NCBI RefSeq assembly: GCF_000009045.1
Contig: NC_000964.3
Location: 3,844,001 to 3,908,000 of the forward strand
Length of the DNA: 64,000 nt
Origin: Bacillus subtilis subsp. subtilis str. 168
GTDB lineage: Bacteria; Bacillota; Bacilli; Bacillales; Bacillaceae
Direction: 5' to 3'
Positions 10,256 through 17,222 of the stretch are shown here, piece by piece; position 1 is the stretch's first letter; each line of letters opens with the position of its first letter. A model generated the notes under the pieces. The model searched no databases, was not told the DNA's origin, and worked only from the letters and a program-made list of their open reading frames with translations. The translations under genes were made by a program, and so were the position numbers.

Positions 10256-12172
10256 CTACATGCCTCGATTTTCCACCTGTTTCACAAGTTTATCTTTAAA
10301 AGTTTGGAAAGGAACGTGTTCATTCTGCTGATGTCCGAATCGGCGGACGTTTACCGCATTCTCCTGCTCCTCATGATCTCCAAGCACCAGCACGTACGGA
10401 ATTTTTTGCACCTGCGATTCTCTGATTTTATAGCCGAGCTTCTCATTGCGCTCATCAATGCCGGCTCTTATCCCCGCCTGCTTCAGCTCCGCCTGCACTT
10501 TTCTGCAATAGTCTAAGTGAACGTGCGAAACCGGTATGATTTGAACCTGGATCGGTGCGAGCCAGACTGGAAAAGCCCCACCGTAATGCTCGATCAAAAT
10601 GCCGAAGAAACGGTCGATTGAGCCGAAAACCGCTCTGTGGATGACAACGGGACGAACCTTCTCATTGAGTTCGTTGATATATGTTAAATCAAATTTTTCC
10701 GGCATTTGAAAATCAAGCTGAATTGTCGCGCATTGGTGGCTCCGTTTCAGGGCATCTTTTATATGGAAATCAATTTTCGGCCCGTAAAACGCCCCATCGC
10801 CTTCATTGATCTCATAAGAGAGGCCAAGCTCCTCAAGGACGCGTGCTAAGGCACGTTCCGACGCTTCCCAAAGGCTGTCATCGCCTAATGAATCCTCCGG
10901 GCGAGTCGAAAGCTCAACAGAATACTCGAAACCAAATGTCCGATATACCTCATCAATCAGCCGAATCGCTTCTTTGATCTCACTCTCAATCTGATCCTCC
11001 CGAACGAAAATATGGGCGTCATCCTGACAGAACGTCCGAACGCGAAGCATTCCGTTTAAAGCGCCGCTGTATTCATGGCGGTGCACCTGTCCGAATTCCG
11101 CCATGCGAATCGGCAGATCCCGATAAGAATACAGGCTGTTTTTAAAGATGAGCATGTGGCCGGGGCAATTCATCGGCTTCATTGCGAATCTTGTATCATC
11201 CACTTCTGAAAAGTACATATTGTCGCGATAATGGTCCCAATGGCCTGACTGCTCCCATAACCGCTGATTCATCATAAACGGCGTACGCACCTCATCGTAG
11301 CCGGCATTTGTTTGCAGCTCACGCGAGAAGCGCTCCAGCTCATTGCGGACAATCTGCCCTTTCGGCAAATAAAACGGCATCCCCGGCGCTTCTTCAGAAA
11401 ACATAAACAGCCCTAACTGTTTGCCGAGCTTGCGATGGTCTCGTTTTGCCGCTTCTTCTAGCATATGCAGGTGCGCATCCAAATCTTTTTTCTTTTGAAA
11501 CGCAACCCCGTACACCCGCTGCAGGACTTCATTTTTGCTGTCTCCGCGCCAATAAGCGCCTGATACTCTTGTCAGTTTGAACGCCTTGATCATCCCTGTA
11601 GAAGGAAGATGCGGCCCTCGGCACAGGTCAACGAATTCCCCTTGCTGGTACAGTGTGATATCCTCCCCGCGCGGAATATCCTTTAAAATCTCAAGCTTGA
11701 GCCGCTCGTCTTTTTGTGCAAACAGCTCTTCAGCTTCTTCGTAAGAAACCTCTATACGTTTGATTTCAAGGTTCTCATTTATTATGTTTTTCATTTCTTT
11801 TTCGATGGCCTCTAAGTCTCCTGATGCCAAGCTTTTCCCCAGCTTCATGTCATAGTAGAAGCCGTCTAAAATCACAGGCCCTACCCCCAATGACACTTCG
11901 CCGTACAGCCGTTTTACTGCTTGGGCCAGCACGTGCGCTGTTGTGTGGCGAAGCACCTGCAAGCCTTCTTGTGAATCGAGTGTGACAATCGAAAGCTCAG
12001 CATCCTCCTCCAGCTTGAAACTGAGATCAACAAGCTTGCCGTTGACCTGACCTGCGGCCGCCTTCTTTTGCAGACTGGAACTGATCGAACCAGCCGCTTC
12101 TTTGATTGTGATGCCTTTCGGATATTCCTGGATCTGTCCGTCCGGAAGCTGAATGTGTACATGTTTGCTCAT
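10256..12172 (-). CDS. thrZ: Threonyl-tRNA synthetase 2 (minor ThrRS)
   Basis: 638 aa; TGS domain; editing motifs HTTAH and DLCRGPH; KPMNCPGH; preceded by Thr T-boxes. Confidence 0.97.
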   Translation of the reverse strand: MSKHVHIQLPDGQIQEYPKGITIKEAAGSISSSLQKKAAAGQVNGKLVDLSFKLEEDAELSIVTLDSQEGLQVLRHTTAHVLAQAVKRLYGEVSLGVGPVILDGFYYDMKLGKSLASGDLEAIEKEMKNIINENLEIKRIEVSYEEAEELFAQKDERLKLEILKDIPRGEDITLYQQGEFVDLCRGPHLPSTGMIKAFKLTRVSGAYWRGDSKNEVLQRVYGVAFQKKKDLDAHLHMLEEAAKRDHRKLGKQLGLFMFSEEAPGMPFYLPKGQIVRNELERFSRELQTNAGYDEVRTPFMMNQRLWEQSGHWDHYRDNMYFSEVDDTRFAMKPMNCPGHMLIFKNSLYSYRDLPIRMAEFGQVHRHEYSGALNGMLRVRTFCQDDAHIFVREDQIESEIKEAIRLIDEVYRTFGFEYSVELSTRPEDSLGDDSLWEASERALARVLEELGLSYEINEGDGAFYGPKIDFHIKDALKRSHQCATIQLDFQMPEKFDLTYINELNEKVRPVVIHRAVFGSIDRFFGILIEHYGGAFPVWLAPIQVQIIPVSHVHLDYCRKVQAELKQAGIRAGIDERNEKLGYKIRESQVQKIPYVLVLGDHEEQENAVNVRRFGHQQNEHVPFQTFKDKLVKQVENRGM

Positions 12173-12203
12173 TTTAGAACACTCCTTATTCATTGTTGTA
12201 TAT

Positions 12204-12435
12204 AAAAAAACACACCCGTCCCGCAGATAGGGACGAGTGTGTGATTAACCCGTGGTTCCACCCAAGTTCCCGACAAATACTATGTTGTCGGCTCGGTGCT
12301 GTAACGCAGCATAGACGGCATTGGTTACTTCAGTTCCCCAATGCTGCTCCAAGGCGGTAAATGATATTCCTAAGCTGGGAAGCTCTCACCTTTCCTTCCC
12401 TCTCTGAAAACCGTAACTATCATTCATGTCCTTTT
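12204..12435 (-). ncRNA. Thr T-box riboswitch, gene-proximal copy
   Basis: T-box GGGUGGAACCACGGG; specifier ACC at 12356-12358; terminator with U7 at about 12204-12242; the 5' boundary is approximate. Confidence 0.93.
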
Positions 12436-12456
12436 CATCGCATGTATTCAATTCAT

Positions 12457-12688
12457 AAAAAAACACACCCGTCCCACAGATAGGGACGAGTGTGTGATTA
12501 ACCCGTGGTTCCACCCAAGTTCCCGACAAATACTATGTTGTCGGCTCGGTGCTGTAACGCAGCATAGACGGCATTGGTTACTTCAGTTCCCCAATGCTGC
12601 TCCAAGGCGGTAAATGATATTCCTAAGCTGGGAAGCTCTCACCTTTCCTTCCCTCTCTGAAAACCGTAACTATCATTCATGTCCTTTT
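12457..12688 (-). ncRNA. Thr T-box riboswitch, middle copy
   Basis: Same elements; ACC at 12609-12611; the 5' boundary is approximate. Confidence 0.93.
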
Positions 12689-12711
12689 CTTCGCATGTAT
12701 TCAATTCAAAT

Positions 12712-12945
12712 AAAAAAACACACCCATCCCTCTAAAAGGGACGAATGTGTTGATCATCCGTGGTTCCACCCAAATTCCCGATCAATTACACATGATGATC
12801 GGCTTAAAGATGCTGTAACGCAGCATGACGGTATCAGATACTTGTTTTCCCTGATACGGCTCAAAGGCGGTAAGCTGCTTTCCCTGCGTTAGGAAGATCT
12901 CAGCTGTCCTTCCCTCTCTGGAAACCGTAAAAAGCATCTCGTGTC
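12712..12945 (-). ncRNA. Thr T-box riboswitch, promoter-proximal diverged copy
   Basis: GGGUGGAACCACGG; ACC at 12869-12871; terminator ending in a U tract; the 5' boundary is approximate. Confidence 0.9.
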
Positions 12946-12979
12946 CTTATCAGTGCCTGTTGTTTCAATAATTTTTTAT

Positions 12980-14900: not shown

Positions 14901-14954
14901 GATTCATTATGGATAACTATTATCCATAATGAATCTCTTAGCAGCTTTTGTCAA
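14901..14954 (-). promoter_or_regulatory. ywgB promoter with overlapping palindromic operator
   Basis: GATTCATTATGGATAA-cta-TTATCCATAATGAATC (14901-14935); TTGACA (14949-14954)-N17-CATTAT. Confidence 0.75.
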
Positions 14955-14955
14955 T

Positions 14956-14991
14956 AAAAAAAGCAAAAGAAACGGATCATTTCTTTTGCTT
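14956..14991 (-). terminator. ywfO-ywgA terminator
   Basis: AAGCAAAAGAAA-N7-TTTCTTTTGCTT plus a T tract on the minus strand. Confidence 0.8.
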
Positions 14992-14998
14992 GGTATGG

Positions 14999-15499
14999 TT
15001 AACAAATCTGCTTCAGTTCCTCTATGTATTGAAGCGCTTCGTCATATTCTTCATTTGTATATTTTTGCTTGCTTTTGATGGTAAAGACTTTTTCTTTCTT
15101 TTCCTCATCCTCAAGCCCGTCAAAGTAAAGGATCGTGGAAACCAGCTCTAAAAACCGTGATGAACGGCTGTTTACACTGTCGATATAGCCTTTCATATCC
15201 GGCATGTCCAGATCAGCATGGTCTAAAAATGCGGAGCCTGTCTCAGTCAGCGAATACCGGTATTGAAAGTAGCCGCCCTTTTTTTCCTTCACCTCATGCA
15301 GAAATCCAAGGTTGCACAGCTCTTCAATCTGGAGCGTCAGTTCCTCTGAATATGGTCCGTAAAAGTGAAAATCATATTTCTCATAGAAAGGAAACTGCAT
15401 TTTCTTGGCGATATAAATCATTTTCTGCAGCTTCTTTCGCCCGATGATTTCTCCAGAATCCGAGAACACCTTCATCAGTTTTGCATGTTCTTTCAACAA
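14999..15499 (-). CDS. ywgA: YwgA-family protein; Panacea/SocA-like motifs
   Basis: 166 aa; GRKKLQKMIY and FYGPYSEEL; TTG start. Confidence 0.85.
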   Translation of the reverse strand: MLKEHAKLMKVFSDSGEIIGRKKLQKMIYIAKKMQFPFYEKYDFHFYGPYSEELTLQIEELCNLGFLHEVKEKKGGYFQYRYSLTETGSAFLDHADLDMPDMKGYIDSVNSRSSRFLELVSTILYFDGLEDEEKKEKVFTIKSKQKYTNEEYDEALQYIEELKQIC

Positions 15500-15534
15500 A
15501 TTCCCGACATCTCCTTTTTCCTTCTTTCCAATTT

Positions 15535-16836
15535 CTATGTCAGTCCCAGCAGCTGCCGGATTTTCATTTTCGCTTCCGGATGTTTAGTGCCGTCACAAAT
15601 CAAGTCCTTTGGATAGTACAGCTTGTGGTCCGTCCGCCGTTTACCTGAGATGGATTCCACAATAGCCGACTGTCTGGACAGCTCTTTAATTTGGCCGTTT
15701 TGCGTCAAGAGATGGATCGGCAGACGCTCCTCTTCCTCTCCTGGTCGGTAAAAATCGTATGGCAGATCTGATGAAGAATCAACGACCAAATAATAGCTCG
15801 GATCGATCCCCGCCTCTTTGAACAATGAAGTCAGCTCAAAATAAGCCGACATTTCTTCATTCGGATTGAATTCAACGTATTGGAAAAGCTGGCGGTTAAT
15901 GAATCTGCGGCACAAGTCGGATAAAATCGCGTCTTCTTCATCCTCCCAGGCCTGGAAGTAATACAAAATAATAGATTCATCCAGCTTTACATAATCCTCC
16001 AGTGTCAATTTTCCTTCAAAAATAGAATAGAAATGAACCGGAGCGTGAGTGAAGACATAGCCTTCATCGTGCAGCTGCTTCGCCCTGTGAAGAATCTTCG
16101 TTAAAATGACCTCTGCACTTCTAGTCACAGGATGGAAGTAGACCTGCCAGTACATTTGGTAACGGCTCATGATATAGTCTTCGACAGCGTGCATTCCGCT
16201 TTCTTTAATGACGATCTGATCCTCGCGCGGCCGCATCACCCGAAGAATCCGCTCCATATCAAAATGGCCGTAGCTGACGCCCGTATAATATGCGTCGCGC
16301 TGGAGGTAATCCATGCGGTCTGCGTCAATCTGACTCGAAATCAGGCTGACCACTTGCTTGTTTTTATATGTTTTGGCAATGACTTCAGCAACATCCTGAG
16401 GGAAACCCGGGCTCACCTTTCTGAGCACCTGATTAACCTCCGTGTCTCCCAAAATGATACCTCTTGTAAAATCCTCGTGGTCAAGGTGAAAGACCTTTTC
16501 AAATGAATGCGAGAACGGCCCGTGCCCGAGGTCATGAAGCAGCGCCGCGGCCAAACAGAGTTCGCGCTCACTGTCATCCCATTCAGGGCGGCCTTTAAAG
16601 ACGTCATCAACCATTCTTCTGACAATTTCATAGACACCGAGAGAATGGTTGAACCGGCTGTGCTCAGCCCCATGGAACGTCAAATAGGTCGTTCCGAGCT
16701 GCTTAATTCTGCGGAGACGCTGAAATTCACGGGTTCCGATCAAATCCCATATCAGCTTGTCCCGAACATGAACATAGCGGTGCACCGGATCTTTAAACAC
16801 TTTTTCTTCTGATAATTTTCCATTTGGATACGCCAT
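15535..16836 (-). CDS. ywfO: HD-domain phosphohydrolase, SAMHD1/EF1143-like dNTP triphosphohydrolase family
   Basis: 433 aa; RRIKQLG, HSRFNHSLGV, HDLGHGPFSHSFE and DADRMDYLQRD motifs. Confidence 0.92.
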   Translation of the reverse strand: MAYPNGKLSEEKVFKDPVHRYVHVRDKLIWDLIGTREFQRLRRIKQLGTTYLTFHGAEHSRFNHSLGVYEIVRRMVDDVFKGRPEWDDSERELCLAAALLHDLGHGPFSHSFEKVFHLDHEDFTRGIILGDTEVNQVLRKVSPGFPQDVAEVIAKTYKNKQVVSLISSQIDADRMDYLQRDAYYTGVSYGHFDMERILRVMRPREDQIVIKESGMHAVEDYIMSRYQMYWQVYFHPVTRSAEVILTKILHRAKQLHDEGYVFTHAPVHFYSIFEGKLTLEDYVKLDESIILYYFQAWEDEEDAILSDLCRRFINRQLFQYVEFNPNEEMSAYFELTSLFKEAGIDPSYYLVVDSSSDLPYDFYRPGEEEERLPIHLLTQNGQIKELSRQSAIVESISGKRRTDHKLYYPKDLICDGTKHPEAKMKIRQLLGLT

Positions 16837-16954
16837 CGTCATTCCCTCTTTTTTTTAGCCGTGTTTCTATTATATCGACTCTATTCTTTGAAAACATCCT
16901 TGAATTTGCCCGGCGATTTGTTCCATCTTCATGAAAAACACATCTTGTGAAGCA

Positions 16955-16983
16955 AAAAAGCCTGACCTGAGGGCCGAGGCTAA
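16955..16983 (-). terminator. Probable ywzC terminator
   Basis: Minus strand AGCCTcGGCC-ctca-GGTCAGGCT-TTTTT. Confidence 0.6.
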
Positions 16984-16997
16984 GAAAAAATATGTTT

Positions 16998-17222
16998 TTA
17001 CTTTTTTATTTTCTTTTTTACTTTGTCAATCAGCTCATCCTCTGTCGGAGCTGACAGCGGGCGATTGTTCACAAAAGCAAATGATTTTTTCCGTCCGGGC
17101 CCGCAATAAGATTGGCATCCTACCTCAACCTTTGCGTCCGGGTCCACTTCTTTCAAACGCGGCAGCAATGTTTTGATATTAGTGGCTTGGCAATCATCAC
17201 ACACTCGAAATTCATTAGCCAT
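16998..17222 (-). CDS. ywzC: DUF1450/YuzB-like small protein with four Cys
   Basis: 74 aa; CDDC and CQSYCGPG; RBS AAGGGAAG. Confidence 0.85.

Follow-up and report, generated by a model that had tools for sequence, protein, structure and literature searches.

The genes ywfO and ywgA of Bacillus subtilis subsp. subtilis str. 168 lie side by side in a 64,000-nucleotide (nt) stretch of the chromosome (NC_000964.3, positions 3,844,001 to 3,908,000), hereafter the window, from whose first letter all positions are counted. The two genes form a bicistronic operon for a two-protein module, composed of a predicted deoxynucleoside triphosphate (dNTP) triphosphohydrolase, YwfO, and a small protein, YwgA. 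The ywfO stop codon (TAG, 15537-15535) and the ywgA start codon (TTG, 15499-15497) leave a 35-nt gap, which holds a GGAG ribosome-binding site for ywgA at 15514-15511. A significant hairpin was sought in this spacer and none was detected (z -1.4). An earlier reading of the locus, made from the letters alone (the sequence-only reading), had described two genes 35 nt apart without a hairpin between them, a single terminator common to both and a TATAAT upstream of ywfO, and each of these features was found in place (Table 1).

The TATAAT is invariant in the six Bacillus species compared. No canonical -35 was found for it, and a sigma-70 consensus scan makes no promoter call here. On the 5' side of this -10 box lies a block of about 35 nt, CAAATTCAAGGATGTTTTC (GCAAATTCAAGGATGTTTTC...; about 16880-16915, minus strand), that is nearly invariant in the same six species. 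The block is not a sigma-70 -35, and it may be a site for a regulator or an alternative sigma factor. A palindromic operator was looked for near the ywfO promoter and none was found, no Rfam element lies within the operon, and the GC content of the locus is ordinary, displaying no compositional anomaly.

Table 1. Features of the ywfO-ywgA locus and of the adjoining ywzC gene (positions in the window).
Feature	Position	Strand	Description
ywfO	15535-16842	-	ATG open reading frame (ORF), 435 amino acids (aa)
Intercistronic spacer, 35 nt	15500-15534	-	between the ywfO stop and the ywgA start; no terminator
ywgA	14999-15499	-	TTG ORF, 166 aa
Common intrinsic terminator of the operon	14953-14991	-	14-bp stem at 14991-14961, then T-run; TTTTTATT
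-10 box TATAAT of the ywfO-ywgA promoter	16869-16874	-	sequence reading and Bacillus comparison
ywzC (DUF1450)	16998-17222	-	gene upstream of ywfO
Probable ywzC terminator	16954-16981	-	AGCCT...AGGCT, then T6; conserved across the Bacillus comparison

The identity of YwfO as a SAMHD1/EF1143-type dNTPase, proposed in the sequence-only reading from four motifs, is well supported. All four are found in the translation (RRIKQLG for RxxxQLG, HSRFNHSLG for HSRFxHSLG, HDLGHGPFSH for HDxGHGPFSH and DADRMDYLQRD for DxDxxDYxxRD), and both Pfam domains of the architecture score over their cut-offs (HD, PF01966, 52.8 bits; HD_assoc_2, PF19276, 47.9 bits). YwfO aligns with EF1143 (Protein Data Bank (PDB) entries 2o6i/3irh/4lrl) at E 1e-134 over residues 1-420, with 52% identity, and with SAMHD1 at about E 1e-30. 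Mapping the EF1143 residue list of PMC3190883 onto YwfO, we found all four metal ligands (H66, H103, D104 and D175, equivalent to EF1143 H66, H110, D111 and D183) and the three catalytic residues His/Glu/His (H107, E115 and H122, equivalent to H114, E122 and H129). Judged by its sequence, YwfO is a full-length EF1143 orthologue and a relative of SAMHD1 with intact catalytic residues. EF1143 of Enterococcus faecalis is a tetrameric dNTP triphosphohydrolase; in the presence of Mn2+ it cleaves every dNTP, and in that of Mg2+ it depends on dGTP as an allosteric activator (PMC3190883). Six of its eight allosteric dGTP-site contacts are kept in YwfO. The two that differ are N36, variable in the family and Gly in YwfO, and the conserved Lys-330, which touches the gamma-phosphate of dGTP (PMC3190883) and is Gln-321 in YwfO (about 15880-15882, minus strand). 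Owing to the replacement of Lys-330 by Gln, allosteric control may differ between the two enzymes. Membership of YwfO in the described defence dGTPase family was considered and rejected, as its matches to the PADLOC anti-phage dGTPase (32.7 bits) and to NCBIfam antiphage_dGTPase (20 bits against a cut-off of 400) are confined to the HD motif and fall far under the cut-offs.

YwgA was less easily placed. It carries the two motifs pointed out before, KKLQKMIY (residues 22-29) and YGPYS (residues 47-51), and these are the most conserved positions of its family: among 100 diverse members K26 and G48 never vary, and conservation reaches at least 90% at G20, R21, Q25, P49 and S51. No Pfam family attains its cut-off on YwgA. 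Its best matches are instead to DarG, both in sequence and in fold. The PADLOC DarG profile (329 positions) matches YwgA residues 6-146 on positions 166-308 at E 4.4e-9, and the family consensus on positions 166-327 at E 3e-15; the NCBIfam DarG model gives E 9.5e-6, at 25 bits against a cut-off of 250. Likewise, a profile of 100 family sequences retrieves at E 7e-4 chain B of PDB entry 7yk3, a structure of DarT bound to DarG in which this chain is the DarG C-terminal domain. An AlphaFold2 model of YwgA built from the 100-sequence alignment (predicted local distance difference test score, pLDDT, 97.3) displays an N-terminal winged-helix-like core with the GRKKLQK helix and the YGPYS strand, followed by a C-terminal helical bundle; a long beta-hairpin wing and this bundle are arranged as in DarG. 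Foldseek searches of the PDB with this model return 7yk3 chains D and B at the top (probability 1.0, template modelling (TM) scores 0.64 and 0.58, about 195 columns). Together the DarG profile matches and the Foldseek match to 7YK3 show that YwgA is clearly a stand-alone homologue of the C-terminal, DarT-binding domain of DarG. In the antitoxin DarG this domain neutralises the toxin DarT, the product of the neighbouring gene, by sequestering it physically (PMC7003065; 7YK3).

Two further observations concern this fold. In YwgA-like proteins the N-terminal ~100 residues give a further match, to the PADLOC candidate PDC-M19A (E 1e-6 to 1e-7), and the YwgA-family consensus has a weak match to Lamassu LmuC models (E 2e-5); a fold like that of the DarG C-terminal domain possibly recurs in other defence proteins. 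The idea that YwgA acts as a DNA mimic was discarded, as the family is not markedly acidic (median isoelectric point 5.8, range 4.6-9.6).

The same Foldseek search raises another explanation, in which YwgA, as a winged-helix transcription factor of the PadR kind, would regulate its own operon and make no contact with the enzyme. Ranks 3-10 are B. subtilis PadR on DNA (E 7e-3 to 2.5e-2), YwgA and its family show weak Pfam matches to winged-helix families, and the strongly conserved block upstream of the ywfO -10 box could be the site of such a factor. However, the PadR match covers the N-terminal half of YwgA only, with a TM score of 0.40 against 0.64 over the full length for the DarG C-terminal domain, and the helix that would have to serve for recognition is acidic (YwgA, EELTLQIEELCN; family consensus, EELALEIDELVE). 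Nor does the promoter region hold the palindromic operator that was looked for, and ywfO and ywgA stay paired although gene order and flanking DNA change completely, as described below. We consider this explanation very improbable.

The sequence-only reading had likened YwgA to the Panacea (DUF4065/SocA) antitoxins on account of its two motifs, and this likeness stands only at the level of a remote superfamily. PF13274 (SocA_Panacea, DUF4065) does not match YwgA at E<=1, nor the family consensus even at E<=10, and of 100 diverse family members one matched it at E 0.005, below the cut-off. As a PanA reference we took the DUF4065 protein gp9 of the Burkholderia prophage phi52237 (Table 1 of PMC8832971) together with PF13274-annotated relatives. 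Aligning the YwgA family with this phi52237-type PanA subfamily, hhalign reports a probability of 8.7% (E 0.004) over 45 columns, which coincide exactly with the LQKxxY helix and the [YF]GP[YV] strand. The GRKKLQKMIY helix (21-33) and the YGPYS strand (48-50) of YwgA thereby align to LQKLAYF and FGPV of PanA; a conserved central helix and a GPV motif have been described for Panacea (PMC8832971). In the Foldseek comparison of the YwgA model with the PDB, a kind of check that had been suggested, the best match was DarG in 7YK3. The best neighbour of the PanA model itself (AlphaFold2, pLDDT 95) is also 7YK3: chain B is its sole plausible match in the PDB, a weak one (probability 0.69, TM score 0.46). 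A PanA profile retrieved nothing meaningful from PDB sequences, and a fold search of BFVD retrieved archaeal-virus winged-helix proteins only, with no annotated Panacea. DUF4065 proteins have been stated to be homologous to the DarG C-terminal domain (PMC13621843). In our reading YwgA, the DarG C-terminal domain and Panacea belong to one remote fold group, within which YwgA is clearly nearest the DarG domain.

The linkage of the two genes was examined in other genomes. The YwgA family is sizeable: it falls into 2275 clusters when grouped at 90% identity, and at 50% identity, with E<=1e-3, into 848. In all 80 Bacillaceae species surveyed ywfO stands immediately upstream of ywgA on the same strand. 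The pair is embedded there among housekeeping genes (pta, a lipoate ligase gene, rsfA and ywzC), with ywzC kept as the next gene upstream of ywfO in 76 of the 80 species, while the Rrf2 gene downstream of ywgA is not conserved. A scan of genome contigs retrieved close Bacillaceae only; for distant relatives (about 25-45% identity) contexts were read locus by locus at 14 loci, the clade being sampled with representatives down to about E 1e-10. At 12 of these a YwfO homologue adjoins the YwgA-like gene (L083, L084, L085/86, L087, L088/89, L090, L091, L092, L176, L177, L178 and L179), one of them from a Phycisphaerales metagenome-assembled genome. The two loci without a confirmed pair are L081, whose contig is too short to judge and carries an unassigned fragment upstream, and L082, a phage orphan with no HD gene. 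The distant partner HD proteins are mostly full-length relative to YwfO, with 28-72% identity or hidden Markov model (HMM) E-values of 1e-91 to 1e-120. Four of the 12 HD genes are incomplete as called or cut. In L088/89 (L088:3581-4990) and L092 (2834-4107) the gene is split into two ORFs, both of which match YwfO in the former, while the second piece in the latter has no YwfO match; these splits may be assembly frameshifts or decaying genes. The L090 alignment stops at YwfO residue 300, and the L087 gene is truncated by the contig end with its C-terminus still recognisable. The arrangement of the distant pairs varies: there are a 4-nt overlap and gaps of about 10 nt, in L091 the order of the genes is reversed, and in L176 they are convergent. 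A neighbourhood survey had been proposed earlier as a check; with 80/80 Bacillaceae species and 12/14 distant loci, the adjacency of ywfO and ywgA is far beyond chance.

Three of the 12 distant pairs (L177, L178 and L091) lie beside defence genes; others examined for context stand among housekeeping genes. The surroundings of L177 (1-8516) comprise a type I HsdR gene, a PDC-S08 candidate (E 3e-131), a resolvase gene and genes of a ThiF/Multi_ubiq ubiquitin-like system. In L178 (1-8636) a gene for a Cas4-like PD-(D/E)XK nuclease overlaps the YwgA-like gene and may be a third gene of the module; Vsr and McrBC are found at the same locus. L091 (1-5721) carries AccI restriction-modification genes. 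Among 2.9 million viral contigs two hold a YwgA relative. One locus, L082:5986-6498 (IMG/VR UViG_3300033150_001288), encodes an orphan YwgA-like protein (family HMM E 2e-38, PADLOC DarG E 4e-15) amid genes for an HNH endonuclease, a nucleoside 2-deoxyribosyltransferase-like protein and a DNA polymerase exonuclease-like protein, with no HD dNTPase gene nearby; other relatives of this protein were sought in viral contigs and none was found, leaving it a singleton. The orphan could serve as counter-defence against host YwfO-type enzymes, much as T4-like phages have orphan antitoxins resembling DarG. Extended to the whole family, this thought gives a speculative and, to us, rather doubtful picture of EF1143-type HD-YwgA pairs as a widespread, unrecognised immune module that works by nucleotide depletion. 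In it the DarG/Panacea-like protein would keep the SAMHD1-like dNTPase in check until a phage cue took it away, the module would have become fixed in the core genome of Bacillaceae, and rare phages would use an orphan such as that of L082 to re-inhibit the host enzyme.

We propose that YwgA acts on YwfO by direct binding and so restrains or gates the dNTPase, a reading to which our analysis gives a rough probability of 55%. It is suggested by three considerations: the characterised relatives with the YwgA fold bind the product of the adjacent gene, members of the sampled clade have a single type of enzyme as partner whatever the phylum or gene arrangement, and YwfO, as a dNTP-degrading enzyme, is potentially self-harmful. 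With YwgA bound, YwfO would be restrained and dNTP pools would survive during replication; if YwgA were lost, titrated or displaced, dNTP hydrolysis would be unleashed. Candidate triggers of such release are stationary phase, sporulation, DNA damage and phage infection. In Bacillaceae the module would be a fixed housekeeping device for dNTP homeostasis, and in some other lineages, where the cassette sits in defence islands, it may act as an immune system based on nucleotide depletion.

Several observations weigh against this proposal. At 80 metagenomic loci of enterococcal EF1143 type (EF1143 itself or proteins 65-100% identical to it) no ORF matching the YwgA-family HMM (E<=1) occurs within 4 kb, in a search that recovered 92/92 positive controls, and EF1143 is active alone in vitro (PMC3190883). 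From these two results it follows that YwgA is an accessory, lineage-specific partner, dispensable for the enzyme, and not a catalytic subunit. Both proteins are detected in a whole-cell proteome of B. subtilis 168 (supplementary file 3 of PMC10090944), with a higher signal for YwfO than for YwgA in one table, the meaning of whose columns is uncertain; this is not what a stoichiometric inhibitor would predict. Across the 80 Bacillaceae, identity to the B. subtilis proteins is 64-98% for YwgA and 74-99% for YwfO. The YwgA family has no match in 50,697 phage genomes and a single one among plasmids, in a megaplasmid record of Priestia megaterium where the gene neighbourhood is unchanged (pta-lipoate ligase-rsfA-ywzC-ywfO-ywgA). 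A syntenic, highly conserved locus of ordinary GC content that stays off mobile elements is unlike typical toxin-antitoxin (TA) or defence genes. Finally, the regulation may run in either direction, with YwgA inhibiting YwfO, activating it or serving it as an adaptor. A search for residues marking the YwgA-partnered HD enzymes yielded 30 columns that split Bacillaceae from Enterococcus-type proteins; as none of them holds in the distant partnered enzymes, they reflect phylogeny and not partnership, and were set aside.

In another explanation, which we find unlikely, YwgA is a positive or targeting partner: it could, like SocA, act as an adaptor in proteolysis and deliver YwfO to a protease, or it could stabilise the YwfO tetramer or localise YwfO. 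The linkage data fit any obligate partner, the excess of YwfO signal over YwgA fits a sub-stoichiometric adaptor, and the Panacea-domain protein SocA promotes proteolysis of its partner toxin SocB, as cited in PMC8832971. Yet the closest relative of YwgA, the DarG C-terminal domain, inhibits by sequestration (PMC7003065), and EF1143 tetramerises and works without a partner (PMC3190883).

The sequence-only reading had gone further and suggested an enzyme-inhibitor or TA-like module. An enzyme-inhibitor pair is consistent with the strict pairing, with the binding behaviour of YwgA relatives and with the defence islands at some loci, whereas a classical mobile TA system in Bacillus is disfavoured. 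In its full form, a type II TA or abortive-infection system in which free YwfO is toxic and YwgA is a labile antitoxin that releases it upon phage infection, the idea draws on the antitoxin-like nature of YwgA, on the distant pairs in defence islands and on dNTP depletion as an established antiviral strategy (bioRxiv 10.1101/2021.04.26.441389; PMC12265719). It is countered in B. subtilis by a locus that belongs to the core genome, with vertical inheritance and conserved synteny in 80/80 Bacillaceae, lies within a housekeeping neighbourhood and shows no compositional anomaly. Furthermore, the gene for the enzyme precedes that for its partner, YwfO appears to be the more abundant of the two proteins, and close YwfO orthologues exist without YwgA. 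For the B. subtilis pair we hold this system to be distinctly unlikely, and we return to direct restraint or gating of YwfO by YwgA as the reading we prefer.

Beyond the pair itself, the AGCCT...AGGCT element in Table 1 probably ends ywzC, and would separate that gene from the ywfO promoter; we infer this from its sequence, as the terminator scan, which requires more G-C pairs, makes no call here. Elsewhere in the window the threonyl-tRNA synthetase gene (10256-12193) is preceded by three tandem T-box leaders (12226-12962, minus strand; 98-106 bits each).

SAMHD1-type dNTPases control the supply of DNA precursors and restrict viruses. To our knowledge, the means by which bacteria stop such dNTPases from starving their own replication are known for few systems, for example Clover. 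If our proposal is true, YwgA would be a protein-based dNTPase brake derived from the antitoxin fold of DarG and Panacea, and would be present in the Gram-positive model organism that has been studied best. The uncharacterised 'YwgA family' would gain a function, the partner range of an antitoxin fold would extend to a housekeeping-type enzyme, and B. subtilis 168 would offer a tractable system for regulated dNTP depletion. The gene family as such is already catalogued, NCBI having named it the 'YwgA family'. In the literature we found no paper that gives ywgA or its family a function or notes the ywfO-ywgA pairing, speculative mentions only of ywfO, and nothing on SAMHD1 and DarG together that concerns a pairing of this type; PADLOC v2 lists no HD dNTPase-YwgA system.

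Compared with known systems, the module combines familiar parts in a different way. DarG is the best sequence-profile and fold match of YwgA over its whole length, but YwgA lacks the macrodomain, its 166 aa being entirely covered by the match to the C-terminal domain, and its neighbour is an HD dNTPase whereas that of DarG is the ADP-ribosyltransferase DarT. With Panacea, YwgA has in common the central LQKxxY helix and the following GP[VY] strand (in AlphaFold2 models of both YwgA and PanA). PanA is, however, devoid of the long beta-hairpin wing and the DarG-like C-terminal helical bundle of YwgA. PanA also has partners among dozens of types of toxin, associates with its cognate toxins in complexes and is often found in prophages (PMC8832971), whereas the YwgA clade was found with YwfO-type HD enzymes only and is essentially absent from phages and plasmids.

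On the side of the enzyme, YwfO resembles EF1143 and SAMHD1 in full-length homology, in the same HD and HD_assoc_2 architecture, in the metal and catalytic residues and in most dGTP-site residues; it differs from EF1143 in Gln at the place of Lys-330 and in its YwgA neighbour, which EF1143 loci lack (0/80). The anti-phage dNTPases (the dGTPase of Tal et al. and Clover) are likewise HD-family dNTPases that need restraint against self-toxicity, but the Bacillus ywfO-ywgA locus lies outside defence islands. Clover provides the precedent for a dedicated partner gene that holds a dNTPase off, since its dNTPase is restrained by a nucleotide signal of the partner enzyme (CloA/CloB; PMC12265719). No nucleotidyltransferase gene is adjacent to ywfO-ywgA, and herein lies the difference between the two systems: the Clover partner is a nucleotidyltransferase that makes an inhibitory nucleotide, whereas YwgA is a small binding-domain protein.

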